64,000 bases of DNA from Chrysemys picta bellii (Eukaryota), in NCBI RefSeq assembly GCF_011386835.1, contig NC_088802.1, positions 41,850,001-41,914,000 on the forward strand. Direction: 5' to 3'. Below the pieces are notes generated by a model. That model searched no databases. It had not been told where the DNA came from and worked only from the letters and a program-made list of their open reading frames with translations. Positions within the stretch are counted from its first letter, which is position 1. Every line of letters starts with the position of its first letter. Below are positions 1 to 29,566 of this stretch, piece by piece. A program made the translations under genes and the position numbers.

Positions 1-1284
1 AAAAAACGCTGGTGCTTCCTCCTCTCCCGTTGCAGCCGTCCTATTTCTGTTACAATTTATTCCACTTGGGTAAATGCAGCCAAGAGGTCGAGATAATATA
101 GGGTCCTGTCATAGAACAGAGCCTGCAGTAAAGGCAGCAAATTGTGCATTCAAATGCCTTTCTCCTGGGCTGGCAGCTGGTTTAAAGCTTCCACATGCAG
201 GGGTGGTGGGAATGATTGGGCCAAATCAGACACTCGGCTCCTTCCCTGTATGCTCCGGATCTGGTAAGAAATGACTCCACATAGTAGCCCAGAGCCAGGA
301 GCATCCTATCTGAATGTCTTGGTAAGGTGGTGTGGTTGTTACCTTTCTAATCCGGGGTTTTGCTAATGAAGCATGTTGTGGCAGATAAGGAAGGCTGAAT
401 AAATACTCAGGGCCAAATTTTGCCGTATTCCACTGCTGTGAATCCAGAGCAACCACATTGGGTTCAGTAGTGTTACTGCCATGGTTGGCATCCACGGAAC
501 CGAGAGCAGAATCTGGCTCTACAGAACGGAGCTCCTGCTGGGTTTCATGGTACATGGAGAAGGCCAAATCTAAGGAGCCCTTGTGGAATAAATTGGGCAC
601 TGAGTACGCGGCCGCGAGACGTGGTGTCCATCCTCCAGCCTGCATGGCTGTCTGGCGGCTTTGCTGCTTGTGAGTCCCATTGCAGAGCTCTCTCCTGCCT
701 TGAGCGTGGGGCGTGGCACGGGTCTCCTAGCCCTGCTCGGGGCGCTCTGCATCTCTGCTTGAATCCATCTCCTGCTTCAAAGCAGACAGCATTACTCACC
801 TGGGGGAGATGGGGAATGCATACGTGAACCGCAATGGAGCACAACACCTTAAGGTTGCCTGTCCACAGATACGCACGGTCCCAGCCTCCTCACACGGACC
901 TGCCCGGTGTCTGTGGATCAACTAGGGGCAGAGGCTCTGTGCATGTTCTGAGCCTGAGTTTCCTCTTCTCAACTTGTTCTCCAGTCTCTGACCAACATCC
1001 CTCCTTTTCCCCTTCCCCAGAGTGACTCCTAACCTACTCTGTAGAGCTCTTCATGAAAGCCAGCTGGCTTAACAGGGGCTGGGTTTTCATTTTACTCCAG
1101 GATCCAATCCTTTATTCTCCCCCTACCTCCTTAGTTCTGAGTTTATTCTATGGGTTTCCTTCCTACAGTGTTTCTTTGGTGAAAAGTTGACTCCGATAAT
1201 AGATGCTGAGGGTAGGTAGCGTCGATAGAAATACAAATCTCTAGAGATAGATAGAGGAGGTGCAGATGGAAGGGAAGTCAGTCC

Positions 1285-1677
1285 AGAGAGAATTGGGTTT
1301 ATTTAGTCTGCAGAAAAGAAGAGTGAGGGGGGATTTGATAGCAGCCTTCAACTACCTGAAGGGGGGTTCCAAAGAGGATGGAGCTCAGCTGTTCTCAGTG
1401 GTAGCAGATGACAGAACAAGGAGTAATGGTCTCAAGTTGCAGTAGGGGAGGTCTAGGTTGGATATAGGAAAAACTATTTCATTAGGAGGGTGGTGAAGCA
1501 CTGGAATGGGTTAGCTAGGGAGATGGTGGAATCTCCATCCTTAGAGGTTTTTAAGGCCCAGCTTGACAAAGCCCTGGCTGGGATGATCTTGTTGGGGTTG
1601 GTCCTGCTTTGAGCAGGGGGTTGGACTAGATGACCTCCTGAGGTCTCTTCCAACCCTAATCTTCTATGATTCTATGA
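1285..1677 (+). mobile_element. CR1 LINE 3' fragment
   Basis: End of RT ([25 protein letters not shown]), CR1 3'UTR and TTCTATGATTCTATGA tail. Confidence 0.93.
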
Positions 1678-3183
1678 GAGGAAGTTATGTGATGAATCAT
1701 GAGGTGAGTGATTCCTGATGGAACAGATGATTCATAGTAGATCTAAGGCCTGATCCAATGACTCCCATTGATTTCAGTGGACATCAGCTCTGGCCTTTAT
1801 TGAATAGGTTATTGAATCATCAGAGAAAAAGAGCAACTCTTTGCAGTACAGTACAGGCATGCCTAGGCCAGATCCTCCGCTGGTGCACAAGCTCCACTGA
1901 AGTCAGTTTCCCACCAGCTGAGGATCTGCCCCACCTATATTCAGGTGTCGATCTTGATGCACAAAAAGAGGTGGAGACAATGAGAAAAATGTCCTGTTTC
2001 TTTATCAGTTTCAGTCTCTATTTTATAATACCCCTTCTGCTGTGGGGTTCGCTCTGCTGCACCCATCCCAACCCTGGACTGTCTTCTCTCTGCCTTATGC
2101 ACCACCAGCAGCAAGAGCTTGGTGTGCATTTAATCTCAATGAATTACCTATTCCAATTTACTTTGCATTGAAACAAAACTGACCTTGAAGACAGCTACGT
2201 TTTTTGGAAAGAGATGTGGTTTGCATTCCACACATCCACCTAAAAATTGAGATCATGGATGCAGAAAGCAGCACGCACAGCAAGAAGCAGCCAGCTATTC
2301 AGAACAGGGAAAACCTGAGCTTCTCTTCTGCAGATTCAATGCACCCAGCCGCTGTCATAATGTGCACGTCCAACAATTTCAGGAAACTTGCGTGGGCAGC
2401 TCTGATTGCGTCCAGGTTACTGGAGGCGATTGAAAGCCGTGACCACGCTACTGTTGAACTGTGTAAGGCTTTGTCTGTCACATTCATGGGGTTTGTGACA
2501 AAAACCTTGCCCCTTGTGGTGGTTTCACAAGGCATTGTGGTCTTTCCACCTCCAGGCAGCGCGTGGCTGAGCAACGTTCGGTCAGTTCTCATCAATGTGA
2601 ATCTGTAAACATCCAGTGTTGTGCAGCATCCAAGAATGACCTGGATTTTTAAATGGTGGAATTTATTTTTTTATTGAAAGATAAAGAATTTTGCCCAAAA
2701 CGGTGTTGACCCAGGGCTCCCCTCCCTGTGTTTTCTGTAATTTGGGGTGTGGGGGTTGGAGGGAGGCTGCCATGTTAAACCAATGACTTTTTTCAATGAT
2801 AAATGGCCAGCCTTGGAAATAATACATGAAAGCAGAGACACTTGATCACTCCTTTCACTGCTGTGGATGTCTTTCTAGAGGAGAATTAGGTAGAAGCATC
2901 CTTGGAAAGATCACAAGGCAGCATCCCTCAGGGAGACTTGATACAGCACAGGAGGGTCTCGGTTACGCTGCCGACCTCACAGCGGGGACGAGGTTTAAAT
3001 AAACGTGACAGGCTATTCTGTATCTTCAGCAGATTTAAAGTCAGGCCAGAGCCCTTGTTGTAATTATGCAAGGTACTAGAAGCGTAAGCATTTTTGCAGC
3101 AGGCTTATTTCAAATGGTGAACTTCTATTCTGCATGCTCTTCCAAGAGTTAGTCATTATGGATCTGATCAAAAGACCATTGAA

Positions 3184-3533
3184 GCAAGAGAAAGACGGAG
3201 GAAAGGGTAGGCCATCAACTGAGCAGGGAAGGAGAGCTAATAACCGATGACATCAAAAAGGCTGAGGTGTTTAATGCCTATTTTGCTTCAGTCTTCACTA
3301 CGAAGGTTAATGGTGACCAGATACCCAGTGTAATTAATATTAACAACAAGGGGGTAGGAATGCAAGCCAAAGCAGGGAGAGAGCAGGCTAAAGAAAATGT
3401 AGATAAGTTAGATGTATTCAAGACAGCAGGGCCTGATGAAATTCATCCTAGGGTTATTAAGATACTAGCTGGAGCAACCTTGGAACCATTCGGTTGAGGT
3501 CCCAGCCAGTGCTACGTTTCTGTGATTCTATGA
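3184..3533 (+). mobile_element. CR1 fragment: early ORF2 segment joined directly to the 3' tail
   Basis: KAEVFNAYFASVFT...GPDEIHPRVIK, then TGAGGTCCC...TTCTGTGATTCTATGA tail from ~3495. Confidence 0.8.
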
Positions 3534-4016
3534 AGTCGGGGTGGTGTGGGGAGTGTATGTAATCAATACCATATTTCTCTGTATCAAGTCTCCCTGTGGA
3601 ATGCTGCCTTCTGATCTTTGAAGGACTCTCCTCGCTAATCCAGTTCTATATAAAGAGCTATCTTAGTGACGCAATGTCTAGTGCCTCATGGATTTTCTCA
3701 TCTTGTTAATTGCCCGTCACCTCTGGGACCTGGAGATTTATTTGTGTAGCTCAACCTCGAAATGAAAATCAGTTAACATTAGAAACCTAGAATTCCACAA
3801 AATGGCACCAAATCTTTGATGCAGAAATGCTAGAGCATTGTAAAGTGAGTGTAAACAGTGTGATGTAAAGGGGATTAGTGTAAATCAGAATTGGGCCTCT
3901 AATGTCAATTAGCAAAAGATAACTCTGCTATTGGGGAATGATTTGAAGGTACTGTATTACTGACCAAAGCCAGCAGGCAGTTTAAATGGACACACTTTGT
4001 AATATACGGTGTTCAC

Positions 4017-4351
4017 CAGGGATCGGCAACCTTTGGCACGCGGCTTGCCAGGGTAAGCACCCTGGTGGGCCGGGCTGGTTTGTTTACCTGCCACGTCCGC
4101 AGGTTCGGCTGATTGTGGCTCCCACTGGCCGCGGTTCACCGCTCCAGGCCAATGGGGGCGGCAGGAAGCGGCGGCCAGCACATCCCTCGGCCCACGCCGC
4201 TTCCACCAGCTCCCATTGGCCTGGGAAGGCGAACCACGGCCAGTGGGAGCCGCAATCGGCCGAATCTGCAGACGTGGCAGGTAAACAAACCGGCCCGGCC
4301 CGCCAGGGGGCTGATCCTGGCGAGTTGCATGCCAAAGGTTGCCGATCCCTG
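4017..4351. mobile_element. Palindromic non-autonomous hAT element (MITE)
   Basis: TIRs CAGGGATCGGCAACC / GGTTGCCGATCCCTG. The whole element is an imperfect inverted repeat. Degenerate 8-bp TSD GTGTTCAC/GTGTACAT. Confidence 0.9.
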
Positions 4352-4408
4352 GTGTACATCTCCGTGAAATTGGGACCTTATTTTGCAGTGTGGGTGTCCA
4401 GAGATAGC

Positions 4409-5047
4409 CAGGGCCAGGTGCAAGTTTCCCGCCCTAGGCGAAACTTCAACCTTGCACACACACACACCCCCCGCAGCCCTGCGGCAGCTCCCCGCCTCCC
4501 CCCTGAGGCACCCCCCTCCCCGGAGTTCCCCTCCCCGGGGAGCCGTGCAGCAGCTCCTCGCCCCAGCCCACCTCTGCTCCGCCTCCTCCCCGAGCACGCT
4601 GCCCCCGCTCTAATTCTCCTCCCCTCCCAGGCTTGCGGCGCCAAACAGCTGATTGGCGACGCAAGCCTGGGAGGCGGGAGAAGTGGAGCGGCAACAGCGT
4701 GCTTGGGGAGGGGGCGTAGCAGAGATGAGCTGGGGTGGGGAGCTGCCGCGGGGGGGGGGGGTGCCTCAGGGCGGGGGAGGGAGCTGCCGCAGGGCTCCCC
4801 ACCCCAGCTCACCTCTGCTATGCCCCCTCCCCGAGCACGCCGCCCCCCGCCGGCAATGACAATAATTGCATGGAGCGGCCGCTGCACTGGGAGAGGGAGT
4901 CTGAGCCGCACGTGTCAGCGCGCCGCCTGCAGACCAGCCCAAGAACGCTGTAAAAAAAAAAAATTTGGAGGCACTGCTTTTTGGCGCCCCCAAATCTTGG
5001 CGCCCTAGGCAACCGCCTAGTTTGCCTTAATGGTAGCACCGGCCCTG
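4409..5047. mobile_element. GC-rich hAT MITE
   Basis: TIRs CAGGGCC(A)GGTGC / GCACCGGCCCTG. Perfect 8-bp TSD GAGATAGC (4401-4408, 5048-5055). Internal inverted repeat at ~4697-4842. Explains the long Pro/Ala/Gly-rich ORFs here. Confidence 0.93.
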
Positions 5048-5948
5048 GAGATAGCAACCTTTATTAAGGGCTTACATTTTCCAAGTTGCTGATCAAGGGC
5101 AGCCTCCATTTACTGCACTGGGAAGAAACTGTGAGTGCCTCAACACCTTTGAGTAATGCATCCTTTATTTAGCTCGGAAGCCTGGTAAATTTTGGCCATT
5201 GGGCCCAGTTCTGAACTCCTGTCAGTACAGATCAGATGTGACTCCTCTGAAATCAATGGGAATACGCCCACGTCAAACTGCACTGATGTGAATTCAGAGT
5301 CAAGGTCATACGGTTTCATTTTGATTGTTGTTTACTTTCAGAGTAATTCACTCCAGTAGGTACACAGCACAGCCCTCCACAGAAAGCTGCCTGGTGGTAG
5401 CACACGCTGTTTACATGATGCTTATGTAAATTTACTTTCTGCCATAACACTTCTTTCAGCAAAGCATAGCTACATTAAAGGCCAAGAGCGTGTGCTTAGT
5501 AAATTGCCCAGTATTATCTTTGGACATTGCAATATAAAATGAGAATCCAGCAGATCTCGTATGGACAACTCTCTCTTGGGTAAACAAGGCTGAGGTATTC
5601 TCTTCCTCTCCGGAAATATGTAATATTGCAGCTCACTGTTTTAAAAGCTGATCTGTTTGATCCCAGTCATAGCTGTCATAATATATGAAATCACTGTCTT
5701 AAGCAAGAGCCATTTGTTTAAAAATATTAATAATAAACTATTACAAACTCAGTTCCAAACAAACAGGCTTTTACCCAACTTGAGTTCTAGCTTTGTCGTC
5801 TTTGTTTACCAGGGCCGCTCCCTGTTTGGAACACTATACAGCACAGAGACATCTAAAGGCTGAATAATATACTCTAAGTAAGCATATTATTAGAAGGGCT
5901 GCAATTCACTGATCAGGAAAAGGGATCCTTGTGTCAGTGCTTCTATCA

Positions 5949-7687
5949 CGGGGTGGGCAAACTACGGGCCGCATCTGGCCCCTCAGGGCTTTGAATCTGG
6001 GCCGCGGGATTGCCATCCCCACACCACTCCCAGAAGCGGCCAGCACCACGTCCCTGTGGCCCCTGGGCGAGGGGGAGTAGAGCGCACTGCAGGCTGCCCT
6101 TGCCTGTGGGTACCTCCCCCAAAGCTCCCATTGGCCGTGAATGGGGAACCGTGGCCAATGGGAGCTTCAGGGGAGGTACCCACAGGCGTGCAGAACCCTC
6201 TATGCCCCCTCCCCCAGAGGCCGCAGGGACGTGGTGCCATCCGTTTCCCGGAGCAGCGCGGGGCCAGGGCAGGCAGGCAGGGAGCCTGCCCTGGCCTCGC
6301 TGGTGTTATACCAATAAAAACTAGCAGGATCTTATTAAAGGGGACAAGATAAAGATGCCACATTTATTATGATAACAATTTGATTTATGACCAAAACTAA
6401 TATCTTAATCCTTATACACACACATTATACCTAATACCTACACACACACATATATATATATCCATCAGATGTTCTGCAGCTGCTGCATAGTTACCAGTCC
6501 TGCTTCAGTCTGTGGCTTGAGTTTGCAGCTTGGGTTCATAGCTTGTGGCGACTAACTGGCCAGGAAAGCCGGGCACAAGGACGAGCTGGGTCTCTGTTGG
6601 GCATGCACCGATGCCCTTCCATGTTGGCAGCAGAATGTTACCCTCCTCCAAAGTTTTCCATCTCACCCATCCTTTTTGTAGGCTTTAGTTTGAATTCAGA
6701 GTCTATAGGTCTTGCTGTGTCACGCTGCCTCTGGGTTTGGTGATTGATCACGATCACCCGTCAATTGCAGACATGACTTTCAGCCTTGGACCGGGCTTTG
6801 ATCTTCCTTCTATTGTACCTTTTCTTTTTAGGGTGGATTCTTCTTACTTTGTTAGGGCTCTTGTCTGCATCTTCAGCCGTTGGTGTTTGAACTCTATTTA
6901 ATTAGGACAGGCTGGGGCTGGAGGTTGATTCCATCATCCATACATACCTCATTCACACATCTAAACTAATAAGATTACAGCAGGGTTTGCAAAAATGAAG
7001 GTTGCAGCAAGCCCTTACAAAATGGAGTAAGCATTTTAAAATGGGGTTTGAATTACAATATGGACAAGTATAGTGGATGGCAAACAGTGACCAGAAGTTA
7101 CACTGTAGGCAAGTGTAATAAATGGTGAACAGAAGTTCCAATACTGAAACAGTGCAAGTCTCAGTGATTTAAGCAGGAATTGGATTGATAGTGAAACCCA
7201 CAAAGGCAGCTGACTGAACAGCTATGGCTCTTAACAAGCATCTTAACTGTTAATTAGCCAGTTATTGGGGTAACCGGCCCTATGAACGAACATTGTTTCA
7301 CTCACAAAACTTTCCTTATGAAGCCACACCAATAAAGTAAACAACCAAAAACAATTTCATTCATGAGTCCTACACTGGATGCCGCTGCCACCCCAGAGCC
7401 GCTCCAAGTAAGCGGTGCCGGGCTGGAGCCCTCACCCTGAACCCCTCCTGCACCCCAACTCCCTGCCATGAACCCTCTGCCTGCACCCCGCACCCCTGCC
7501 TTGAGCCCCCTGCCGCAGCCTGCATCCCAACTCCCTGCCCTGAGCCCCCTGCCTGCACCCCAACCCCCTGCCGCACTCCACACCCCTCCCGCAATCCAAC
7601 CCCCCGCCCCAGCCCTACATTCATGGCCCTGCAAGCAATTTCCCCACCCCGATGTGGCCCTCGGGCCAAAAAGTTTGCCCACCCCTG
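5949..7687. mobile_element. hAT non-autonomous element interrupted by a solo LTR
   Basis: Termini C(A)GGGGTGGGCAAAC / GTTTGCCCACCCCTG. TSD TTCTATCA/TTCTAGCA (7/8). Confidence 0.85.
6304..7374 (-). mobile_element. Solo LTR (ERV1- or Gypsy-type), ~1.07 kb
   Basis: TG...CA termini (TGTTATACC...GTCCTACA). 4-bp TSD CTGG (6300-6303, 7375-7378). AATAAA on the minus strand near 6363. Abrupt shift from GC-rich flanks to AT-rich interior. Confidence 0.75.
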
Positions 7688-8993
7688 TTCTAGCATGTGG
7701 TCCTACTTCTATTTAAGTGAGTAGCAATAGGATCAGGCCCATAGTTTCTCAATCACTTTGGGGTCTGTGGTGTAATACATATACTATAATACATTGTACA
7801 GACAAGTGTTTGACTACTTAGTGCCCAGGGTCCGGGAGAAAATGGCCCCGAGGCACTTCACAAACAAAGGTTTTCCCAACAGTGGATTTTCCCAGAGTAA
7901 TTCCAGTGGCAGAGGACACGAGAGGCTTCCTGGGTATGTATTGTCAGAGTTCCATGGGAGTTGGGTGCTGATCTCCCACTCAAATTCTGCAGGATTTGGG
8001 CTTCTACCTACGTTAGGTCCTTTGAAAACACCAGCCTAAACCCTCTTGGACCACTTGATCCCTACACCTTGCAGGCATCCCACACAGAAAGTCTGTGGAG
8101 TGTGAACTCCATGGGGCTAACTCTGTTTTCATTTACACTGGGTTAAATCAGGAATATCTCTATTGACATCAGTGGAGATACACTGGTGCAAAACCAGGGC
8201 AGGTGCGATCAGAATCAGGCCCACTGGGTTTGGTGGCAGGAATGTTCAGGGTGCAGCTGCATCCAAACGCTCCCAAACCAGAAGTGAGCCCAAGCTGTGT
8301 AATCTTTTTTCACAAGGACACATTTGTTTTTCTCTTTGGCAGTCGGGGACAGATGTGAGGGAGCCATGCAGATCCCGGGGATGGACAGGAGTTTGGGAGG
8401 AAGAACTCCCAGTGGGGAAGTCTGTCTCTCTCTTTATAAAAGAAGCTTGGCTCGTAGACGTGAGCTGTCCAGGCCCTGTCCTCAAGACTCATCTTTTGCG
8501 GTTCTCTCTTCCATTAGATTTAACCGTGCACTCATGTCTGTGGTAATCGGTGGAGAACTCCACTGTAAACTGGGGCGTTTATATGCTGTGAACATGCCAT
8601 TCAGCTTGTAGAGTGGAGTGGTAATGCCGTGCTAGAACGTGTGGCTTTGATGGGCTTTGTTTCCCAATCCAGCAGTTTTAATGGCATGACGTGTGGAATA
8701 CAATGCCCGCTGGGTGCCACTTCTATCCCTTCCGCCCAGTAGGGAGCCAGGGTGGGTTCCTTCCATTTCTCCCATCACGGCCAACTCAGATGGTCTCTAA
8801 GGAACATCGTCCGAGCTGGAGCACGGTGCCAGAGCCTTGTGTTAACTCAGCCGGGGCGTGGTGGGGTTTGCATGGAGAACCTCCTGCAGTGATACAAGGA
8901 TCACAGAGTAACGAACCTCCTCTGTATTGCTGTTTCTGTTTTGTGCGTGTGTCTTTTGTTCACCATTTGCTTTTGGTCTTTTCTACTGAACAG

Positions 8994-9034
8994 CCGCGGT
9001 TCCGGAGTCCTGCCCTATAAACATTGACGAATAG
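8994..9034 (+). CDS. RNF157: RNF157 alternative (cassette) C-terminal exon, (A)AVPESCPINIDE*
   Basis: Long polypyrimidine tract + CAG acceptor (8991-8993). The 41-nt exon is phase 1, like the terminal exon, and ends in TAG immediately followed by donor GTATGA (9035). The peptide aligns gaplessly to the remembered MGRN1 short tail ALGPDSCSVGIDE*. Confidence 0.75.
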
Positions 9035-9886
9035 GTATGAGATACGCAAAGTCCGAACAACCCTCCCTCTCCTTTTACTGTTTGATTCTTTTTTTTTTAG
9101 ACTTCTCTTGATGAGCAAAATTGCCCCCAGGCCACAATTAATGGGGAAAAAAATCTGGCCCCGCCCCTGTACGCCTTGATGGTGAGCCCGTCCCCTTGAG
9201 AACATGAGGGGTTTTCCAAACCCGGTGAGCCTGGATCTCCACTGCTCTGCACCTGGGGTTGTCACTGACACCAATGCACAGTGGGCGTCAAACACTCCTG
9301 GAGCAGAATGTTTCACCCACTTGGCACTGGCATAACGGATGCCGCAAAGTGCAGGACAATGGAGAATGGGGCCCGCTGCTTGGATTCAGCGCGAAAGACC
9401 GGTCGTATGTTGGGGGGCTTATTCTGAAGCTGGGCTGCTCTCCTCCGGCCCCCGCCACTGGCTGTGGTTTAAAAACAAACAGTGAAGGCTTTGGTGAGTT
9501 CTGCCGGCGTGTGCTACCCATCCACATGCAAAGGGAAAAAGCCACTCCCAGTGCAAAAAACCAACCAACCTAAAATAATACCCTGGGGTGGTTTGTAGGG
9601 GAATAAATTACCCCTCCATGGCATAATGGAATATTGCTTTGGATGGGGAGGGCAGGTTCTGGTTCGTGTTGGCAAAATGGTTTCTCCCTGGAGAGATCTT
9701 CCAATTCATACTCCGTTTGGCCTCGTTGGGGCTAACTAGCCCAACAGGGGACGTGTCTCTGTTAATGTTAACCTCTTATTTTATTATTTACATTGCAGTG
9801 AGGCCTGAAGACCCCTAGTGTGCTGGGTGCTGTATGTACACACAGTGAGAGACAGTCCCTGCCCCCAATGACCTGACCATCTAAAT

Positions 9887-10080
9887 CAGTGGTTCTCAAA
9901 CTATTGTACTGGTGACCCCTTTCACGTAGCAAGCCTCCGAGTGTGACCCCCCCTTATAAATAAAAACACTTGTTTATATATTTAACACATTATAAATGCT
10001 GGAGGCAAAGCGGGGTTTGGGGTGGAGGCTGATAGCTTGCGACCCCCTGAGAGGTCCCATCCCCAGTTTGAGAATCCCTG
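9887..10080. mobile_element. hAT MITE inserted in an older L2/MIR-type repeat (~9790-10310)
   Basis: TIRs CAGTGGTTCTCAAAC / GTTTGAGAATCCCTG. Perfect TSD ATCTAAAT. The flanks join into a MIR/L2-like sequence. Confidence 0.9.
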
Positions 10081-12097
10081 ATCTAAATAGACAAGGCACA
10101 CAAAGGGAGTGTTATTTTCCACTGTTCACAGATGAGGAGCTGAGAGCTGGGCCCAGAGGACTAGGCCTGATCTGGCGCTATTGAAGTCTAAGGGTTCAGT
10201 GAGAGCAGTGACTTTCCCAAGGTCACACAGAGAGTCGGTGGCAGAGACTGGAACTGAATCCAGGTCTCCTGAATCCCAGTCCAGTGCTTTAACCCCCAAA
10301 TCACCCCGCTTCCCTTTTCTAAGCAGTTCCTGTGGGGTTTGAAACCATTTCTCTCTTGTGGACTATAAGGACCAGCGTTTTATAGGTAGTTAGGTGCCTA
10401 TCTCCCATTTGAAATCAATTGGTGATAGGGACTTAAATACAGTACCTTTAACAATCTGACCTTAAATCGCTGTGCATTGCTTTGAAAACCTAGGGTTGTA
10501 GGTCTGAACAGAGCCCTCCTACTCCCCATCCAACATCCCCATTTTATAGCCTGAGAATCCTGTTGACCTCTTTGTGTGCATTAGCAGTTAAGGTCTTCAG
10601 CCTCCCCAAACCTGCTGGATTTGACTGATTTCTGTTGACTTTATGCCGTGAGAAAGTACATATGAAGTCAGTGACCTTTAATCCTGAAAAAATCCCATGT
10701 GTACCTAGAGCAGTGATAGGCAGCCTTTGGCTCTGGCCCCACGTGTGGCTGTGAGAGGCCAACAGATCTAAGAGGAGCATCTTATGCCCTACCTAGTCTT
10801 GGGCAGGTGGCCCAAGTCCTCTCCATAATGCACACAAAGTGGTGGGGAAAATGCTAAATCCTGGGATCCCTCTCCATCTTCCCAGCAGCCAGGAAGGAAG
10901 GGGCAAGCAGTTGATAGACCAAATTCATCCCTAATGTAATTTCATGGCAGTCAGTGGAGCTACACCCTGGATTTGCATGGCCCAGTATTTGCAGGCACCT
11001 TGCCGACAGCCAGAAAACAATCCCAGGTGCTCTCCTGACGCTGCTTCTCCATGGTAGCTTTCAGCGGTGGCATCAGGCTGGGATTGTGGTGGCCCCACGA
11101 TGTGACGTACACATTGCCCTTTCAGGATTAGTTTTGTGTCTCTGCAAGGCCTGCTGCTGCTGAAGTGGATTTCCAGGTCTCAGGGGCAGAGCGGTGGGAG
11201 AACCCCCTTCTTCTGGGATGTTTCTTCGTTCTGTCAGCAAATAAACAAACAATGGGGGTGGTGCCCTTTTGATTCTGGAGCAAAACACTCCAAGGCTTGT
11301 GAACCTTGATGTAAACTCACGGGAGTTAGTCGCCTCGTTTAGCATTGTGCTGTAGGCAGGCTAAGCACCATAAATTTCCTGGGCAAAAGTGTAATGCCTT
11401 TGGCCTAAATTAACACAGACACACGCTTCCTGCACTAAGCAAAAATCCCGTCTCAGCACGGCGGTTATGTTTTTAGTTTATCTACAGCTGCAGGCTCTGT
11501 TCAGAAGCCAGGTAATTAAGACATACAATGGATTGTTGTTGCCATTGTACATTTTGATTGAAGCGAGCACTAGCGTATCCCAGTCATTTCCACAACAAGG
11601 AGCCTGGACGATCTTTGTCCTGCCGCAACCAGCCCCGCTTTGAGGCAGCAGTTTTCCGTCTGGTGGAAGCCAGTTAGAGTGAAGTCATTTTTCCCAGCAC
11701 GGGTTGCTGTAAGATGAGGTTCTCCCCCTAGCTGGAATCCCCACGGGTAGTTTTCAAAGCGCTGAAGCAACTTGGGACTCATTGGAGCGCCGCTGTCTGT
11801 GAACTCACACGTCTACCTGAAATTCTGCCCCTGGCTATGAACTTCTAGAAGTTTGGCTAAAATGGGGCCCAGTGAGGAGACCAGCCCGCTGTAATGTTGC
11901 AAAAAAGAGTCCAAAACCCAACTGTTAGCAGAGCTGCTTCCCCAGCTCCCTGCAGCTGTCCCATCCTTCTTCAACTATAGGGCAATTCCACGCTGTGCCC
12001 AGATTTAAAATATCAAGTGGTATCTCGGAGGTCCCCTGCTCTCTGCTGACAGTGGGCACCGCTGTGCAGTGTGTAATCGCTGTCTTCTCTTCTCCAG

Positions 12098-12225
12098 GTA
12101 TCAAGGGGTCAGATGACAACGCCCTGACCCGCAGGCCAGCCCAGAGGCACCATCTGTCTTCCAGCAGCATCAACCTGGAAGAGGAGGAAGATATGCAGTG
12201 CATGATGGGCCCGCTGGCTGTCTGA
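12098..12225 (+). CDS. RNF157: RNF157 (E3 ubiquitin ligase) terminal coding exon, (G)IKGSDDNALTRRPAQRHHLSSSSINLEEEEDMQCMMGPLAV*
   Basis: Acceptor TCTTCTCTTCTCCAG at 12097. Translation matches the remembered human RNF157 tail (DDNA..AQRRRLSSSS..GPLAV*). Position upstream of FOXJ1 fits synteny. Upstream RNF157 exons were not found in the window. Confidence 0.9.
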
Positions 12226-14147
12226 AGAGACTCCACCCTCTCTGGGACTGCATGCTCATTTCAGCATCACACTGGAGGGAGGGCAAAGCCCCCCACCCAC
12301 CACACTTCCCCAGCACTAAAGAAACACAGAGCAGCAGCTCTGTGGGCATTAACACCTCAAATCCAGCCGATGTAGCGATACTGATTTTTACACAATTGAA
12401 CCTGGACGTCTCATTGCTCCTCTCTGTGGACCCTTTCCCGATATTTATGCTAAGACAAACCGGGCTCACCGTGATCACAGCAGAACCGGTTTTGTTTGAA
12501 TTAAGGAAGAGTGGCTACCCGGGTCTGAGGCTTTCCAGTCTCCTCCTGACATCTATCCACGTGCTGTAGCCAAGGGCTAGTTGGTTCTCTCTCCGCCCAC
12601 TCCTGTCCCCTTCAATGTGGTGACCAGGGAATAGGGGAGGAAAGAGCTGATGTTTTGCGCCCTTCCTCCACTCCTGCCTCTTCTCTACAGTCTTCACTGA
12701 TAGTTTGAGCTCTAGCTTCTCAGCTGGGCCCCAGGGCAGCGCTGAAAGGTCTGCGTGCATGACCCCGCAGGAGATGTTCCAGGGTGGGAGGTCTGCATGA
12801 CAGCGAGGGCCTCCCGCCGGGGAAGTGGGGGAGGGGAACGAGCGTTCGTCTCCGGGTTGGAGAGGTGGGCGCCGCCTGCACTTGGCGGTTGGTTAAGAGA
12901 GGAGCATGACTGGGAGCAAGCCTAGCTGCCCATGGGCAGGCTCTCCCTCCCGTGTCCATCTGCATGTAGCTCACATTCATCTACCTCGCAAGCGTGCAGT
13001 ATCCACCTCGCTCGCTCAGCTACACGCACTCTGCCGGTGTAAATTTCCCTAAGGCCTGAGCCATGTAAGGCTAAATCCTGATCTCATTAAAGTCAATGGG
13101 AACGTGGCCATTGCCTTCAGTGGGACCAGGATTCGGCTGCCCGTGCTCGTGATGATCCTCCGAGGGGCAGGCTCGCACACACCCATGGGGACATCTGTGC
13201 TGGTGCATGCAAGCAGGTGAGCTTACGAATGAGGGCTGGCATACCTGAGTAGGTGCACTTAAGCGTGCAAAAGACCATGCATATGTAGGCTTATGTACAT
13301 GCCAGCATGCATGGACCCTGAAGCACGTATGTGCACGTGGGTGTGAGTGCATATTCACATTTGCTCAGCCCTCCCTTGCCCTGCCAGTTGGTGATATCTT
13401 TACCCCGACACCGACACGTGAGGATCAAGCCTCCAAATTCGTGCTTTAAATGCGGCTGATTTCACACCTTCAAAATATCCCCTCGGTCCCCCTTACCCTC
13501 CTCCCTCTGCCATCCTGCAGCTCCAGGCCTTTCTTCCTGCTGCAAAACCAACCCAAGCAATAACCCAGCTCCCCTGCTCTGAGCCATGACTCAGCAAGAG
13601 ATCAGAGGAAGGGCAATTATTGGCCTGGAAGTGGGGGCTCACTTCTTAATCTTCAGCCTTTGCTTCTGTCTGGTATTTAACTAGAGGATCTGGGGCAGGG
13701 AAATGGTAACCTAGTTCCCTACAATGAAAGCCACAGCAGGGGCCCAACAGCCAGCCTCTCAGAGATGGTGAAGGGACTTTTCCACATCCTCCAAACTGCC
13801 GCCATGCTGGCTCCATTCGTCTCAGCTGGAGGGGGCTCAGCGCCAGCCGACGCCCCTCTGTCCTGAACAATTGCAGGGACAAACTCAGCCCCTCTCTTTG
13901 TTCCTTCTCTCTAAAGCACCTTGCAGAGAGCGTCGGCAAACAAGGACGTGTGCGCTGCGTCGCCCCCCGACCTCCGACCGCTGGTACCGTTCCTCCCACT
14001 CCACCCCCACTTTTCACTCCTCGGTTTTTCTTTCGATTTCTGACCTGTTAGTCTTGGAGCAGCGTGGCGAAGGGCACAGATTGAGCCCGGGGGGGGCTTT
14101 AAGAATGCAGGATAAGGCGGGGCAAAGCATAGCAGACCCTCAGCGGC

Positions 14148-14560
14148 CAGGGCCGGTGCAAGGAAGTTTCACGCCCTAGGCGAAACTTCCACCTTGCGCC
14201 CCCCCTGCCCCCCAGCCCTGCGGCAGCTCCCCACCCCCCTCCACCCTGAGGCTCCCGCCCGCCCTGAGACGCCCCCCGTGGCAGCTCCCCCCCTCGCCCT
14301 GAGGCACTCCCCCGCAGCAGCTCCCCACTCCCCGACACGGGGATCCGTGCGGAAGCTCTGACCCAGGGGTTCCCCTGGGCTGCTGGTGGCGCACTGACCC
14401 AGGGGAACCCCTGGGTTGCCTGCCGACAGCTCAGACGCCCTCTCCCTCCCAGGGCAGTGGCCGCTGTAAAAAAAAAATTGGGGGCGCCGCTTTTTGGCGC
14501 CCCCAAATCTTGGCGCCCTAGGCAACCGCCTAGTTGGCCTAAATGGTAGCACCAGCCCTG
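14148..14560. mobile_element. hAT MITE (same family as 4409-5047) inside the predicted RNF157 3'UTR
   Basis: Shared ends CAGGGCCGGTGCAAG..GCCCTAGGCGAAACTT and GGCGCCCCCAAATCTTGGCGCCCTAGGCAACCGCCTAG. TSD TCAGCGGC/CCAGCGGC. Confidence 0.92.
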
Positions 14561-15220
14561 CCAGCGGCCTGTGGAGTGAAGTGATCAGCCTCCAACCATT
14601 CAGCTTGCCCTTGGGACAGAGGGAAGGCCCGGGCTTCTCCCGCAGTTACCAAGGGGCCCTTTGAGAAGCCCGAGGGCAGGTGCAGACGGGATGCCAGGAA
14701 TCATCTGAGTCTTTGTTATATTTCCTACCCGAAATACCCCTCAATAAAAACACTGCCGCAATCGACAGTAGTAGTAGTCGTAGCTTTTTGGGAGTTGGAG
14801 CCTTTTGGCCCATTGCTGTAGAATCCGATAGATGAACCAATAGCAGACAGAACCCCCCTCTCCCCTCCCCCCCCCCCCGTGTCTTCTCTATGCTCTGTTT
14901 TCTCCATGCTACAGCTGTGTCTCCAGTGCGGGCTGAGCGTGATGGACCCCACGTTTCTGGGGCCTCGGCTCTTTCCCGCAGGAGGAGGAAGGCGGTCAGA
15001 CCCGAGGTCATGCATGTCTGTGACTCTCACCATGCAGAGCCCAGAGTGATCCTTGGAGCAGAACGCGGGTGGCACGATCCCAACCTGCAACGGCAGAGTG
15101 ATTCTATTCCTGCGGGTGCATGCACCAGGGTGGGGGGGATGTACACCCCGTATACACACCGGTGCACTTGGCAAAGGCCGTGATGCAATATGTACTTATT
15201 GCTGCATGGTTCTAACAGTG

Positions 15221-15226
15221 AATAAA
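15221..15226 (+). terminator. Probable RNF157 polyadenylation signal (3'UTR ~12226-15245)
   Basis: AATAAA with upstream TGTA (15191) and downstream GU-rich TTGTGGGTTGTGTTTG (~15261). A second AATAAA lies at 14743-14748. Confidence 0.55.
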
Positions 15227-18200
15227 CCTGTTTACATGGGAGGTGCAGCCACTAGTTGGAATTGTGGGTTGTGTTTGCACAGGGAAGGGGTCCGTTGCCT
15301 TTACAGTTTTCTGGTCCATTTTTACCTTTTCTAAGACGCCGGGCCAGGGCTCAGCCAGTGCTACTCCTGCTTCCTCTGGGCAAAGAGCTCTTATCCCTTT
15401 AGGCTCTTGAAATCTGCTGAACAGCTGCACGTTCCACTGAAGCCAATGGGGGCTGCAGGTGTTTGGAATCTGGCCCTTAAGAAACAGCTTCCATGTTGCA
15501 TTTCTGTGGCAGGATTTCCCCTTGGCCTGAGTGACCAGCTAAGGGGAGGGGATCCCCAATCTCTCCAAAGGCTAAAGATTCTGCCTGACAGGGGCAGCCC
15601 AAAGCACACAAATTGTAACTTGTAGTGCTGGGCAGCACGTCCCATCGGTGCAGGTTAAGGCCAAAGCTGACCCGCTGCAGGGTAATATGGTAAACTCAGT
15701 TTCTGTTGCTCTCTCAGGAAAGATCCCAGTATGGGAACTCTGGTTTTGGGTTTGAATTTTAAAACTCAAGTGGATCTCGAGGTCGGTTGAGGGCTCCTGG
15801 CAAGCTGCCATGGTGGCCCTCTCTCACCTGGTCAGTTTCTGCCCTGCCCCATACTCTCCAGCTTTTGCATCCGGCTCTAGGGCAGATTTCCTGTTCTCAC
15901 CAGTGAGACAACACTTCAGCCTCCTTGGTGGAGACTCACGGGAGCCCAGTCTGAGCAGCCATACCAGAGCTGGGTGCTGGCTGGAAATCAAGAGTCTTAT
16001 CATTGAGCAGATGGTAAAGACCAGGGCTGGCTCGGTTGTAGCATAAACAAGGTGACCAAGTCAGGGGTTTTCCACTTTATCTGCTCTAGGACTCTCAGGT
16101 CTCCTGCCTCCCACTGCTAGTGTGTGTCCCAGAGAGACTGGGGAGGGGTTACCAGGCCAGATTCCTTGGCTGCAGCATTCTTTCTAGGCAGTGCATGGAG
16201 CAGGTTTAGCAGCCATTGTTTATTCTGCTCTGCCAGTCAGAATTGAAGTGACACATAGTAATTACAGTATAAGGGGAGGGTAGGAGGGTCTGGGTCATAT
16301 TAGCTGGTTAGATGATTGAGTCATTACACCAGTGGAGTAATTCCACTTCAATTGGTGGAGTAACTCCAGATTTGCCCTGGTGGAATTGAGAGCATCATAT
16401 GGCCCACTGGATAATGAAGCTTTTTGTTGCTGGGAGGAAAAGCCAGCCCATTCAGGGGAACCTGAGGGTTTCTGCTTCCCAGCATCCCTGCATTATACGC
16501 TAGCACCAGCGTACTTGGAAGGATAACAATGAACCTAGGATGGCTACATTACATGCTTACCAAGGCTTTCTCTCTCCTGGCTTAAAAGGGGACATAAAGA
16601 ACTCTTGGGGCCTGTTTCATCAGGGGCATGGAGAGCGGGAGTCCTGGTGCATTGCAGGGGCAGTTCTCCTGGACTGGGAAGGAATGAAGGGGTCTTTGCT
16701 CTTTGCCTTTTCTGACAACCAAGTTCTGGAAGAGAGTGTCTATTACGTTTAACAGAGACCGTTAAACCAGCTGAGCCTGTCTGAGCCACGCAGGGAGCTG
16801 CAGAACAGCAGCGAAGGAATAGGGAAATGGAGCTCCGCCTAAGGTACTCACATGAAGTGACTGCTTAAGCTGGTAGTATAGGGTGATTCCTCACTTCACC
16901 TTTAGCTTACTGCTATAAACTGAACGTGTGAATGAATCTGGGTGACCAGGTGGGCTGACGTATTGTAGCAACCTTCCCCCATGAGAGACGTGGGTTCACA
17001 TTCAGTTTGGCAGCATTACAGTAATTCCTACTGGGGAACTCTGTCTACCTGATGGGCATTTGGTGCTCAGCTGAGATCCTTTGGAAGAGCCATTTGGGTG
17101 ATCAGCATTACCCTGCTGGGTGGTTTGCAGGCAAGTGTCGGGCAGGCTGGCAGAGCTTTCCAGGGGAAGCTTAATGACCCCTTGCCACAAGTGAAGAGAC
17201 ACTCATCCCAGCCATTTCTAGTGGAGTGGTTCTCCAGCTGTGGACCAGGACCCACCGGTGACAGGGGGGCCCTTCTTGGTGGGTCAAAGAACAAAACATT
17301 TTGAGCTGCCAGCAATGGGCGACAGAGGTTTGGAGGAGACCTGGGTTCCTGGGCGTGGGGGATCTAACTCTTAGAGTACTTAACAAATAGGGAAAGTTGA
17401 AGAGCTAAGGCTAGCAAGGAGGTTCAACTCCTTGGGATGCACAGCACTGTCTTGATAGTGCTTGTGTCTCCTGGAGCAAGGTCCTAGTGCTACCAGCCAT
17501 TCACAGATGCACTTGCTGGTGCTCTTTGCTCACTGCTCAGCCTAATTAACCTAGATCTTCATCTGTCATGAATCTGAGAAGAAAGGAAACCAGTTCCAAA
17601 TCTTGCTTCAAGCATGTTCTTGGTGGTTAAAAGTATGTTTAATGAAAGGTTATTGGGCATCTGTTAAGGGCCAAAAATCTTCTCTCCGTGACACTGAAGG
17701 AAATTCAGAATAACTTTACTGACTTCAGCTGAGTTCTCCAGATTTACGGGGTGCAGTTGAAAGCAGGCTTGGGCCCTTGTATCTCAGCCAGGTCGCCAGC
17801 CAGACAAAACCTGCATGAGCCAGTTTTTCAATCACCTTTCTGTGTGTGGGCAGAGACGTTTGGCATTATAAAGAGACATGCAGCATGAGGGAGCACGAAT
17901 GGGGATGTTTTGCTCACCCTTTTCTTAGCTGTGACGATCAGAAAGCTCAGATAAGGAAGAAGCTCCTTTCCCTGTAAGCTCTGAATGGTTTCTCTTCCTA
18001 GCGATGAAATGGATCTAGAGGTTTTGGTTGGAACATCTGGTACAATGCTGTTCAGCAAGGCAGAATGCAGCTGACCCATGATGACTCAGCTGCCGGGTCT
18101 ATCTGCAGGTCTGGGTCACTGACAGAATGTAGTGATCGCTTACAATCAGCAGGTGGCATGCATTAGTCAGAAACATGGCCGAGGATTAGGCAGAGGATGA

Positions 18201-18519
18201 ACGGCCCCGCATTCTTGCACAAGGGGTCGAAATTATTCTACATTAGTCACTTCTCCCTGACCCAGAGGAGAGAGGGGACGCAAAAAAAGGAGTGTTATAA
18301 AGGGCGGGGAAAGAGCAAAAAAGAGGTTGAGAGCCCACAACGAAGGCTGTGATCAACTCTAAGTAAAGTATGACTGATGAAAGAAAACGAATGGAATGAT
18401 TCTGTGCGCGTAGGACAGGGGGAGTTTGATGCTGATGAGTAATTACTAAACCATACTTTGCATGTCTATAGCACCTGCCATCGATGGAGTGCAAAGCCCT
18501 GTAAAGGAACTGATGGATG

Positions 18520-18810
18520 TTACTTAGATTGTAAGCTCTTTGGGGCAGTGGCCCCAACCCGGGGGTGTGTGTTTGTACAGCGCCTAGCACAACGGGGCCC
18601 TGGTCCATAACTGGATGCCTAGAGATTACTGCAATACAAATAAATAATGATCATCCCAATATCCCTTTGAAGTAGGTCTGTATTATTATCCCACTTGTGG
18701 GGAAACTGAGGCACCGAGTGAGTAAGTGACTTGCTCATTGGTCACCCAGAAAACCTGTGGTAGATGAAAGACTAGAGACTAGATCCCTTTGAGTCTCAGT
18801 CTTGCCCTGT
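18520..18810 (+). repeat. L2/MIR-type relic (L2-like tail followed by CORE-SINE segment)
   Basis: GATTGTAAGCTCTTTGGGGCAG...GTACAGCGCCTAGCACAA, then ATTATTATCCC..GGGAAACTGAGGCAC. Confidence 0.65.
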
Positions 18811-19164
18811 TGCTTGGATACTGTATCACTGGGGGGAGAGGGAGTGAGCTAATCTGTGTGGCATTAACATTGTGTCTCCTTTTAAAGCTGGGCATTTTAT
18901 GTTAAAAGGGAAACGCTGATTATCATGCCCCACAGGAATGGGTTTCCTCTCTATTGATCTCGGAGACTGGGGAACAATCACATCAGGGCCAAATCTGGAG
19001 AGACGGGCTCACGATTTAACTTACTTCGACTCAGATGAGCTCCCATTAACTTCAGAGGAAGTTTCCCCTTCGTAGGGATGGAGCTGTTGCAGGGTAAGGA
19101 CGACAGGATTTCCCCTGTAATGACTGGCTGGGAATCCCCGGGAAGCAAGGCTGCCCGTACCCAG

Positions 19165-19415
19165 GGCTTGTCTTCACGTACAGTGCTGCCGAGGCACAAC
19201 TACAGTGCTTTAATAGAGATGCTACTATGCTAGGCATAATGAATCCACCTCCCCGAGAGGCGGTAGCTATGTTGGCGGGAGGAGCTCTCCAGTTGACCTA
19301 GTGCTGTCTACGTGGGGCATTAGGTGGGTATAACTACATCGCTCAGGGGGGTGAATTTTTCACACCCCCGAGGAACATAGTGATGCTGATGTACGTTTGT
19401 AGTGTAGACCTGGCC
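19165..19415. mobile_element. Non-autonomous Harbinger/PIF element
   Basis: Right TIR TAGTGTAGACCTGGCC followed by TAA. Degenerate left TIR GGCTTGTCTTCAC. Confidence 0.7.
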
Positions 19416-20359
19416 TAACAAACCCACCTGGTCTCTGGAGGTTTAAGGGCCTCCCTGATTCCTAGTGAAGAAGCACAAGGAATTAGGGTTCTTTATGGGG
19501 GACCAGGTACGTTCTGAGTGGCACCCGGAGTGTTGTGCTGGGAGCACAAAGGAGCATGGAGAAAAGCAACATCTTATTTAAGGAAGGCCCCGTATCATAC
19601 CCCCTCCTGGGTGGTTCCGCGAGCTCTAACCCGCCCCAACGTCCTGCTTGCTGACCACAAGGCAGTTGCTGTGGTGAAGCTCTCAGGTTGTCTCTGATGG
19701 AGCCAGGAAGAAAAATCATTTTCTGTAGGATTTGCATTAAGTATAAAGCAGCCACTCACAGGCTGTCTCCCGGTCCATGTGCTGCCCACCCTGCTGCAGA
19801 GATACATTCCCTGAGTGGCACAGGACACTTCAGCTGGTTTATTAAAAGCATTATTAAATTATTAAAACCCCAGAGTCCGATTTTGCTTAAACACAAACCT
19901 CCATTCCAAACTGCGTACGAACTTGAAAACGTTTAGCAGGGTGCCTTGGCTGCCCAGGTGCTTGGTAACTGCTTAGATGCCACGAGAAAGGACTGAGGCT
20001 TTGTGAGAACTTCCAAAATCGACTCAGTAGCGAGGTGCATAAACAAAGCGCTTTATTGATCACTTCTGTACTGCCTGCCTGTGTCTGCGTTCACTTTCCC
20101 CCCACACACACACCTTCCCACCAGTAGGAGCGCTAGTGTAGACAGGGCTGCAGGTTCTAACCCCTGTCTTGTCTAACCCTGCACGGAGCAGCTCTAAGGT
20201 GACACGGAGGTTAGAACACCCTCAGCTGCTAGTGCTTTGTTCACACTAGAGTGCCCCCTTTTGCTAGCATGGGTAGAGCTGGATCAACGGATGCAAAGGT
20301 AGGGAATTTTAGGGAGTGCAGGGATGGAGAAAACAGAAAAGACCTAAGAGCATCCACAT

Positions 20360-20512
20360 GAGGTGATGGAATCTCCATCATTGGAAGTTTTTAAGAGCAG
20401 GTTAGACAAACACCTGTCAGGGAAGGCCTAGATAATACTTCGTCCTGCCATGAGTGCCGGGGACTGGAGAAGTTGACCTCTCGAGGGCCCTTCCAGTTCT
20501 ATGATTCTATGA
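20360..20512 (+). mobile_element. CR1 3' end fragment
   Basis: GGAATCTCCATCATTGGAAGTTTTTAAGAGCAGGTTAGACAAACACCTG...TTCTATGATTCTATGA. Confidence 0.85.
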
Positions 20513-22649
20513 GCATTGGCATAACACCCAATGCCTCGCCCCAGCAATGCATGTGTTGTGCTCACTGGAAAACCTGAGATGGATTCTCTGCTGGGTCGCC
20601 TCCCCTTTGGTTGGTCCAGAGTCCTGGGCATGAGTATGGAGGGGATGGTCCTAGGCTATCACAAGGTGCTCTTTCAAACATGCTCCTTAGCTGCCGCTCC
20701 CAGGTTGTTCACAGGCTGCTTTGGAGGCCTGGGGGACCAGAGCTGTTATCCCACAGGGATTTGGAGAATCAAAGGATGAAAGTAAATTTACCTTACCCTG
20801 ATTTTCCTGCTTTATTTTTCGCACTGGGGCAGCACCTTGGGTGTCCCAGGGGAACACCCCCACCTCACACACACACACACTGCCTGCATGGTATAGCGCA
20901 ACCTGCACTGTTTGCTTGTGGGTAGGGTGGGTCAAGACCCCTCTGTGCCAGATCTGCAGATGGTGTGAGTCTGGTACAGCCCCAGCAGAGCAGTAGCACA
21001 TGCTTTTAGCTCTGCAGGCTCCCTGTGCGTCAGCCAAGATAGCAGCCGTCACATTCATATAGGAATGGGTTGGGCCCAATCCATCCCTGGTGGGACTCTG
21101 CGGCGCATGGCTGGCGAGGATGCATCGTATGATGCTGTTGTATGGAAGTCGCTATGCAAACCCCAGTGGTACAGCATTGGGGCGGTTGTTCTCCAGTTTC
21201 AGGAAGAGATCAGAAGCTGCTGATCACTATCACGGGACAAGGAGTGGCCGGCAAATATCAGCACTGACCGGCCTGCATCTCCACAGTAATTCAGTGAACT
21301 TCCTTGACACGGCTTAGGAGCTGAAGGAAAACCAGGGCCACACAGTCTCCGCCCTTCCCTCCCCTTCCAGTCCTTCACCGGAGGGGAGTTTTGTTTATCC
21401 CTTTCGCTTCCCCCATGGTGCAGCCCAGTTGCAGCGCTGAAATGACTGATTAAAAGGGATTTGGGCTGCCAGGAATGTGTGGCCATGTTGCCGTCCCATT
21501 GGAGGGTGGGCCCAGATGCAGAGCTGAGGGCCAGCAACCCTTGCATACTAAACTCCACCTCAGAGCTCCAGCTAACCTGGGGCAGTGCTGGGCTTAGGGA
21601 AGCGTCTCCCACTCACCCATGTTGGCTGTACCGGGGAATGTGCTGTGGAGAGCACTATGCTTTTCTCTCTTGAGCGGGAGTTATTTTTCATTAAGGACTC
21701 TTAGAATAACTGGCTTGTGGGGGCAGCGGGGCAGGGAGTCATTATGGGGGAATGTGACTGTAACTGTCTTAATTAAAGCATGGAAGAACCCAGCAGCCCC
21801 TTTGATTGAGGGGTCTGTCAGCCCCTCACCCCCCCTTCAGCTTTCTGCCTGAGCTAATGACTTCAGGTTACACACAGAGGTCACAGCTTCATAGAGCCCA
21901 GGCAGGTAAGTGGAAAAGGGGCCCATTTCCTCCCAGATGCCAACTCCACTGACTGCAACAGGGCTGCCGCAGGGGTGAATTGGGCCTCCAAATGCTTAGC
22001 AGCATGAAAGACTTGCTATTAATTCCTTCTCCAGCAAGGAGAGAGCCTCGGGAAGAGTGGGGACCTCTGCGCAGGAATGCTGCCTCCCCCCTTCATCCTC
22101 TCCCAGCAGCAGACAGGGTAGGCAATTGGAAAGAAGCCCCCTTCCCTGGGCAGCAAGAAGGGGCCGGTAAATGGAGTTTAACTGGGCAGAGGAGATCCCG
22201 AAATTTGTCCCCAGGGAGTGGCGAGCCGAGGGTTTAAATCATTCCCTTCTTTTCAAGGCATCCATCATTCTGGTTGTCAAGTTGGGGAGGTTTTGGCCGC
22301 AGTTTCTTTAGCATCCCGATGAAGAATAGGCATCTGTGAGCTATTTCAACTGGACTTTAATTTGTCTTAATGAAACTCAGAGCAGTCATCCCACCTGGCC
22401 CCTCTTTTGCTGCTACCGCGTAAATCAGTGGACGGCGATCCCCCACATACCAGCTCCATCCCCTTAGAAAACAAACCGGGCCCAGTCTCAGCTGGGGATT
22501 TCGATGGGTGTTCTTTCCTAGCCTCCAGATGTTAAACATTCCGATCCGCCAACAACAACTTACTAAGGAAAGGGGGAGAGGAAAGAGGGGGAAGAAGAAA
22601 ATAAAAAGTTTGGGCAAAGTGGCAGAACTGCAGATGAAACTGGCAAGTG

Positions 22650-22730
22650 ACTGAGCTCTCCATGGAGATCAGTGGGCCAATGGCAAGGATGGAAGCTGTT
22701 TATAGGGGAGGAGCGTCTCCATAGCATCCA
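22650..22730 (+). promoter_or_regulatory. Candidate FOXJ1 core promoter: X-box-like CTCTCCATGGAGAT (22656), CCAAT (~22676), TATA-like TTTATAG (~22699), X-box-like GTCTCCATAGCATC (22715)
   Basis: Motifs read directly from sequence, ~200 bp upstream of a strong donor CAG|GTAAGG at 22928/22929. RFX regulation of FOXJ1 is established. No TSS data. Confidence 0.45.
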
Positions 22731-22928
22731 GCGAAGCCTTTTTGAGCAGCTACTTAATGACAGTCATTCTGCTGCTTACAAATCACTGCAGCTCTGCAAT
22801 AAAGGAGCTCTGGCAGAGCTTTGGGTAATAATTTATCCAAGGGGGGGAAAAGTAGAAATTCCCTTTTTTCCAGAACATTCCTGCTGAGCTGTGAACTTTG
22901 GAAGCCGTGGGACTGTGATAAGGATCAG
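22730..22928 (+). other. FOXJ1: Putative FOXJ1 non-coding exon 1 (5' boundary approximate)
   Basis: Donor CAG|GTAAGG at 22929 pairs with acceptor CTTCCTGTTGTTCTTGCAG at 24116. An alternative donor GTAAGT lies at 23068. Confidence 0.45.

Positions 22929-28750: not shown

Positions 28751-29566
<816 letters not shown>

Follow-up and report, generated by a model that had tools for sequence, protein, structure and literature searches.

An alternative coding exon at the 3' end of RNF157

The window analysed here, a stretch of 64,000 nucleotides from Chrysemys picta bellii, very probably contains at 8994-9034 a conserved protein-coding alternative exon of RNF157, flanked upstream by the last constitutive exon and downstream by the terminal exon at 12098, with skipping yielding a long C-terminal tail and inclusion yielding a short tail and leaving the terminal exon as 3' UTR. 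Exon use, conservation and phase were assessed by sequence comparison and with RefSeq-type gene models. The exon itself is already known, since public RNF157 models end in it and Chrysemys X8 has the identical peptide; the new points are modest, namely the parallel with MGRN1 and the occurrence of the long, degron-bearing tail outside eutherians. The coordinates of the turtle features and of their bird counterparts are collected in Table 1.

Table 1. Features of the RNF157 3' region (turtle positions are those of the window; bird positions are those of each locus).
Feature	Position	Strand	Reading or signal
41-nt alternative coding exon of RNF157	8994..9034	+	phase 1, (A)AVPESCPINIDE, last three bases TAG
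Acceptor region	8949..8993	+	polypyrimidine tract ending acag; UGC at 8968-8970 (-26)
5' splice site GTATGAGA	9035..9042	+	adjoins the stop codon directly
Terminal exon, coding part (long tail)	12098..12225	+	phase 1, (G)IKGSDDNALTRRPAQRHHLSSSSINLEEEEDMQCMMGPLAV then stop, preceded by ...ttctccag
Stop codon of the long tail	12223-12225	+	
Further alternative C-terminal exon, start	2009..2028	+	phase 1, (V)SVSIL then stop
FOXJ1 forkhead exon	24172-24804	+	
FOXJ1 last exon	28775-29566	+	
Duck homologous exon	L001 4884-4924		41 nt, AAVPDSCPIDIDE then stop
Pheasant homologous exon	L003 7276-7316		41 nt, AAVPDSCPIDIEE then stop
Tinamou homologous exon	L005 6479-6519		41 nt, AAGPDSCPIDIDD then stop
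Pheasant upstream exon	L003:4277-4387		...CDNNNDLSIAHVKALDNKLCSEACLP, ends ...CLP+G/gtgagt, phase 1
Duck terminal exon	L001 5586-6533		
Pheasant terminal exon	L003 7671-7767		
Tinamou terminal exon	L005 about 7014-7046		

Direct reading of the plus strand across 8994-9034 gave ...ttttctactgaacag/CCGCGGTTCCGGAGTCCTGCCCTATAAACATTGACGAATAG/gtatgagat (slashes mark the exon boundaries), with the 41-nt block flanked by acag on its 5' side and by gtatga on its 3' side. Read in phase 1, the block encodes a tail of 13 residues, (x+CC)=A and then A V P E S C P I N I D E, followed by TAG, and each of the remaining two frames contains stops. The frame of the cassette is set by that of the terminal exon because the same upstream exon precedes both. 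Re-reading revealed that the preliminary description had been exact in the exon's coordinates, phase, peptide, terminal TAG and GTATGA donor. By a crude position-weight score, the donor ranked within about the top 4% of the plus-strand GT sites and the acceptor within about the top 3-4% of the plus-strand AG sites. In addition, the exon region is single-copy within the 64-kb window, in which a degenerate DNA pattern for the short tail had one match, and the same pattern had 0 matches among metagenome contigs.

The possibility of a chance intronic pseudo-exon was considered in view of the 96 exon-like AG...GT pairs with equal or better scores in the 64 kb (41 on the plus strand and 55 on the minus strand), four of which also have an in-frame stop at their end; the sequence features of the exon are by themselves not beyond chance, and its significance comes from the cross-species data. 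A chance origin was rejected as having a negligible probability, as the length, phase, stop and donor are exactly conserved in birds, an identical peptide is annotated, and the tail is homologous to that of MGRN1 (see below).

Gene identity and neighbouring exons

The terminal exon was identical (42/42) to the tails of C. picta bellii X2/X6 and Trachemys X1 (P0185, P0183, P0206), and it has LSSSS and GPLAV in common with RRLSSSSLEDSETRPCVWGPLAV, the C-terminal peptide of the human protein as given in PMC5582827. FOXJ1 was located on the same strand, 12 kb downstream of RNF157. In duck and pheasant, the gene ending shortly before FOXJ1 carries RNF157-like_N and RING domains, and RNF157 exons are present at the tinamou locus. 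The terminal-exon identity, the human peptide match and the FOXJ1 neighbourhood thus identify the locus as the 3' end of RNF157, and both marks by which an orthologue was recognised, a terminal exon matching RNF157 C-termini and FOXJ1 as the next gene downstream on the same strand, were found. A search of protein representatives with the 41-aa terminal exon gave 0 matches, and a homologous-protein search with region 57-98 of the 98-aa open frame around this exon gave no candidates. As an observation on the neighbouring gene, turtle FOXJ1 was absent among the best 120 matches of the FOXJ1 search, though FOXJ1 records exist for Macrochelys and Pangshura. A 163-member protein cluster that includes P0191 mixes FOXJ1 with RNF157 records, which looks like an artefact of bookkeeping and not like biology.

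Scans of positions 1-8993 of the window gave no match to the upstream constitutive exon; the last constitutive RNF157 exon, ending ...KLCSEACFP+G in phase 1, is located 5' of the window. The preliminary description had named a different phase of this exon as a finding that would count against it; the phase is 1, as read directly in the pheasant upstream exon (Table 1).

Two further sources of C-terminal variation were observed. A third alternative C-terminal exon of RNF157 starts at 2009, where the plus strand reads ...ctttatcag/TT TCA GTC TCT ATT TTA TAA (2009-2028), and the resulting (V)SVSIL tail is identical to that of C. picta bellii isoform X5 (P0191). A second AG lies 6 nt downstream, and its use (exon start 2015) would give (V)SIL, identical to the tail of Natator depressus X3 (P0207), the starts at 2009 and 2015 forming a tandem-acceptor pair. 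Moreover, a 111-nt penultimate exon (...GAFLGLRCDNNND...KLCSEACLP) is skipped in isoforms of several turtles and geckos (P0198, P0220, P0225, P0226, P0227, P0219), in which ...SPTQED is joined straight to either tail, with the frame preserved because 111 is a multiple of 3.

Elsewhere in the window, non-coding blocks at 21754-22844 (about 21.7-22.8 kb) had conserved counterparts in gecko, anole, birds and a frog, and these likely represent the FOXJ1 promoter/5' UTR region. A 50-nt block at 17604-17653 showed 84% identity to duck L001 7262-7309. The plus-strand segments 1251-1650 and 3183-3494, with open frames resembling the ends of CR1 ORF2, are CR1-type LINE fragments, as would fit a turtle genome.

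Conservation of the exon in birds

For the comparison with birds, loci with 10-kb flanks anchored on FOXJ1 orthologues were taken from the duck Oxyura jamaicensis (L001), the pheasant Phasianus colchicus (L003) and a tinamou (L005), and single exons or existing protein records served as search queries; at the FOXJ1-anchored loci of the anole (L002), gecko (L006) and spadefoot toad (L004), the 10-kb flank stops short of RNF157. A homologous 41-nt exon was found in all three birds (Table 1), preceded in each by a pyrimidine tract and AG, and ending in TAG followed directly by GT (gtaggag, gtatgag and gtaggag for duck, pheasant and tinamou, respectively). The order of the upstream, 41-nt and terminal exons is common to turtle and birds, with the bird terminal exon (GPEAAN...) lying 0.35-0.66 kb 3' of the cassette (from L003 7671 and L001 5586). 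When window positions 8000-24000 were compared with the bird flanks by blastn, the cassette was among the very few segments aligned, the block showing 84.6% identity to duck over 65 nt and the terminal exon remaining unaligned. The 41-nt block, whose absence from related species had been set beforehand as evidence against the exon, is thus kept in duck, pheasant and tinamou, and its peptide is kept in other turtles and the alligator.

Among the four exon sequences, 10 sites were variable, eight of them at third codon positions, one at a first and one at a second (binomial P ~0.004). Such a third-position bias marks selection acting on the encoded peptide rather than on a splicing element alone.

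The bird sequences also bear on whether the 41-nt exon might be an alternative last exon, polyadenylated within the intron that follows it, and not a cassette joined to 12098. The pheasant gene record, which has a 658-aa product, ends exactly at the stop codon of the exon, and AATAAA/ATTAAA hexamers occur in the turtle intron at 9602, 9959 and 11240; however, the pheasant range may be CDS-only, and the nearest hexamer is about 570 nt off and unconserved. Furthermore, the GT right after TAG has been kept in the turtle and the three birds over roughly 250 My, and the first 10 intron bases after the cassette show 60-80% identity between turtle and birds with little identity beyond them, which makes an alternative last exon unlikely and argues for a cassette spliced to the terminal exon.

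Short-tail isoforms in public records

The RNF157 record set was obtained by a penultimate-exon search, using as query a 394-codon stop-free frame of duck L001 in which residues 33-72 were scored, the long frame allowing full-length proteins to fall within the accepted lengths; this search returned 76 RNF157 proteins. Thirty of the fetched RNF157 records carry the C-terminal motif P[DE][SP]CPI.I[DE][DE], and 27 have the long tail. The exact short-tail match was C. picta bellii X8 (XP_008162103.2), which is identical in sequence to Malaclemys terrapin X2 (XP_053903841.1; both as P0202) and whose ending ...KLCSEACFPAAVPESCPINIDE is identical to the window peptide; at other extents, the C-terminus of P0202 reads AAVPESCPINIDE and ...CSEACFPAAVPESCPINIDE. 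Short tails were recorded in turtles (Chrysemys X8/Malaclemys X2, Mauremys X4, Emydura X3, Pelodiscus X5/X7 and Carettochelys X2/X4), in Alligator mississippiensis X3, which ends AVVPESCPINIDE, in lizards (Sphaerodactylus, Paroedura, Heteronotia, Gekko, Tiliqua and Hemicordylus) and in birds (Lonchura, Colius, Centrocercus, Apteryx and Patagioenas). All of these RefSeq/GenBank short-tail models are computational predictions. Chrysemys, Pelodiscus, Emydura, Carettochelys, Sphaerodactylus, Paroedura, Heteronotia and Lonchura each have annotated long-tail and short-tail isoforms, so that in the models of those species the exon is an alternative one and not constitutive. The mammalian RNF157 records fetched, which were from Bubalus only, had long tails and no short tail. 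A literature search found no paper discussing the C-terminal isoforms of RNF157, and full-text searches with the peptide strings returned nothing relevant.

Correspondence with the short tail of MGRN1

A profile of 14 RNF157 short tails (alignment A1) was searched against 177,635 distinct PDB sequences with E values up to 10, and its sole match was chain D of 9qru, 'Isoform 4 of E3 ubiquitin-protein ligase MGRN1' (E=0.58). Residues 516-530 of MGRN1 isoform 4, LPALGPDSCSVGIDE, aligned to lPAavPeSCPInIde without gaps; nine residues lie beyond position 530 in 9qru_D, which we take to be a tag. Weak by itself, this E value derives its weight from being that of the only match, from the match being a paralogue, and from the position of the aligned segment at the native C-terminus, in register with the LP/A junction. 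The MGRN1-type tail pattern LP-A-x-x-P-[DE]-S-C-x-[IV]-x-I-[DE]-[DE] was found at the end of the native MGRN1 sequence in 9qru_D (516-530). When MGRN1 ...LP/ALGPDSCSVGIDE was set against RNF157 ...LP/AAVPESCPINIDE, 7 of the 13 residues after LP were identical, at equal length and with no gaps. The MGRN1 short tail ALGPDSCSVGIDE, which had been named in the preliminary description, is therefore real, and it has the same LP/A junction and the same length as the turtle tail. Two other searches of the PDB, with the 13-mer X-padded to 20 residues and with the C-terminal 204 aa of P0202, gave 0 matches each.

MGRN1 produces alternative C-termini via splicing of the last exon region, its exons 12 and 17 being alternatively spliced (PMC7599452), and its long tail is unrelated to the SSSS/GPLAV tail of RNF157 (PMC5582827). 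The 41-nt exon is probably ancient because MGRN1 has the same tail, and the simplest reading would be that this tail arose before MGRN1 and RNF157 were duplicated. Regulation of Smoothened has been reported to need the disordered C-terminal region of MGRN1 (bioRxiv 10.1101/2025.09.11.675358). Together with the retention of the same 13-residue ending by both paralogues, this suggests a conserved short linear motif, one that merits testing.

The long tail in turtles, geckos and birds

RNF157 is reported to be expressed mainly in the brain (cited in PMC5582827). CDH1-driven degradation of the human protein depends on D-box II (R656/L659), and the Ser660-663 cluster, which is phosphorylated in response to PI3K/MEK/CDK2 signalling, enhances CDH1 binding (PMC5582827). 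The tail carrying D-box II and Ser660-663 has been described as eutherian-only (Dogan et al. 2017, PMC5582827). The turtle terminal exon encodes R-H-H-L followed by SSSS and ends in GPLAV, and a tail with RxxL, an SSSS-type cluster and GPLAV was found in turtles, with geckos more diverged (P0183, P0185, P0188, P0177, P0229, P0234). The long tail is thus clearly not eutherian-only, being present in turtles and geckos, with a diverged replacement in birds; older non-mammalian RNF157 models probably ended in the short tail.

The bird terminal exon starts with GPEAAN(N/T)..., homologous to turtle GIKGSDDNAL, has no SSSS cluster, and ends ...AAALPV in annotated isoforms. Two observations concern individual birds: the tinamou retains a relic, ...EDPHCFWGPSAS, without a stop, and the duck GenBank model runs through to a stop at 6533 to give a 960-aa product. 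As for the extreme C-terminus, the -L-A-V end common to turtle, buffalo and human fits the hydrophobic-x-hydrophobic class II PDZ pattern, and geckos end in -LCPL and birds in -ALPV; a role of -LAV as a class II PDZ ligand is at best weakly suggested by this fit.

Sequence signals that may regulate the exon

The preliminary description had connected the upstream GCATG motifs and a TGC in the polypyrimidine tract with neural control of the RBFOX and SRRM4 types. The motifs themselves are present, but the GCATG coordinates had been misplaced by 1-2 nt: they lie at 8684-8688 and 8870-8874, not at 8685 and 8868. Relative to the exon, GCATG occurs at -310 and -124 in the turtle, -297 in the duck, +210 in the pheasant and +188 in the tinamou, with none in common, and no GCATG was found within 400 nt downstream of the turtle exon. 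RBFOX-type control was therefore not borne out, the motif being positionally unconserved in birds and missing from the 400 nt downstream in the turtle. Upstream RBFOX sites usually favour skipping, and downstream ones promote inclusion.

For SRRM4, a UGC motif near the 3' splice site, the sequence criterion applied, was present: it lies at -26 in the turtle and at -28/-27 in the duck, pheasant and tinamou, inside a CACCAyGTGCCTTCTG-like stretch. SRRM4-type control of the 41-nt exon is suggested by this placement, with which an ordinary branch-point/pyrimidine region would be equally compatible. Most SRRM4 targets are 27 nt or shorter.

Proposed consequences of exon inclusion

With the exon skipped, the protein ends in the long tail with the RxxL motif, the SSSS cluster and -GPLAV. 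With the exon included, translation stops at its last codon, 13 residues past the constitutive exon, the protein ends ...FPAAVPESCPINIDE and should keep the engager and RING domains, and the terminal exon is left as 3' UTR. The earlier claim that inclusion removes RHHL-SSSS and -GPLAV and puts the last exon into the UTR follows from the reading of the terminal exon. The short isoform should lack the degron and the phospho-switch because it is the turtle long tail that keeps R-H-H-L and then SSSS; inclusion would thereby remove the part on which, in human RNF157, CDH1 binding and degradation and PI3K/MEK/CDK2-dependent phosphorylation rely. Because alternative splicing removes the D-box II/Ser660-663 tail, work on RNF157 stability should name the isoform used.

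The stop codon lies 0 nt from the junction at 9034. Under the 50-55 nt rule, a stop this close upstream of the last junction does not elicit EJC-dependent NMD, and translating ribosomes would clear the junction complex upstream of the stop. EJC-dependent NMD should therefore spare the mRNA if the 9034 to 12098 junction is the last one, and it is plausible that the short-isoform mRNA is NMD-insensitive. This position of the stop also bears on the view that the block is a non-productive 'poison' exon that lowers RNF157 output, its peptide being irrelevant. Stops in all three frames and good splice sites on either side of a short block would suit a poison exon, but the stop is the last codon, placed where EJC-dependent NMD is least likely to be triggered, the peptide has been kept while third positions vary (8/10 variable sites), and the same end motif occurs in the paralogue MGRN1, in a protein that has been expressed and solved; a poison exon is consequently very unlikely. 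A coding role of the exon is the reading preferred here, and the conservation of its peptide argues that the short-tail product is made.

A wider scheme is put forward tentatively, as a possibility more doubtful than credible at present: the choice between short and long tails would predate the MGRN1/RNF157 duplication and, in RNF157, would act as a regulated on/off switch for an APC/C-CDH1 degron and a PI3K/MEK/CDK2 phospho-cluster (RxxL + SSSS), the cluster being amniote rather than eutherian and lost in birds.

Comparison with known systems

The RNF157 exon resembles the neural microexons controlled by SRRM4 in its UGC near the 3' splice site, its shortness and the reported, mainly brain expression of RNF157, but at 41 nt it exceeds their usual size. 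The short-tail isoforms of sauropsid RefSeq/GenBank models contain the same exon as the window, with no difference. The short ('S') isoforms of MGRN1 have the same tail ending as the short form of RNF157, but they derive from a paralogous gene and were compared at the peptide level. Finally, the long tail of human RNF157 (PMC5582827), RRRL-SSSS...GPLAV, is like that of the turtle, RHHL-SSSS...GPLAV, with the difference that the human tail has the basic RRR context of an Akt-type site where the turtle has RHH.
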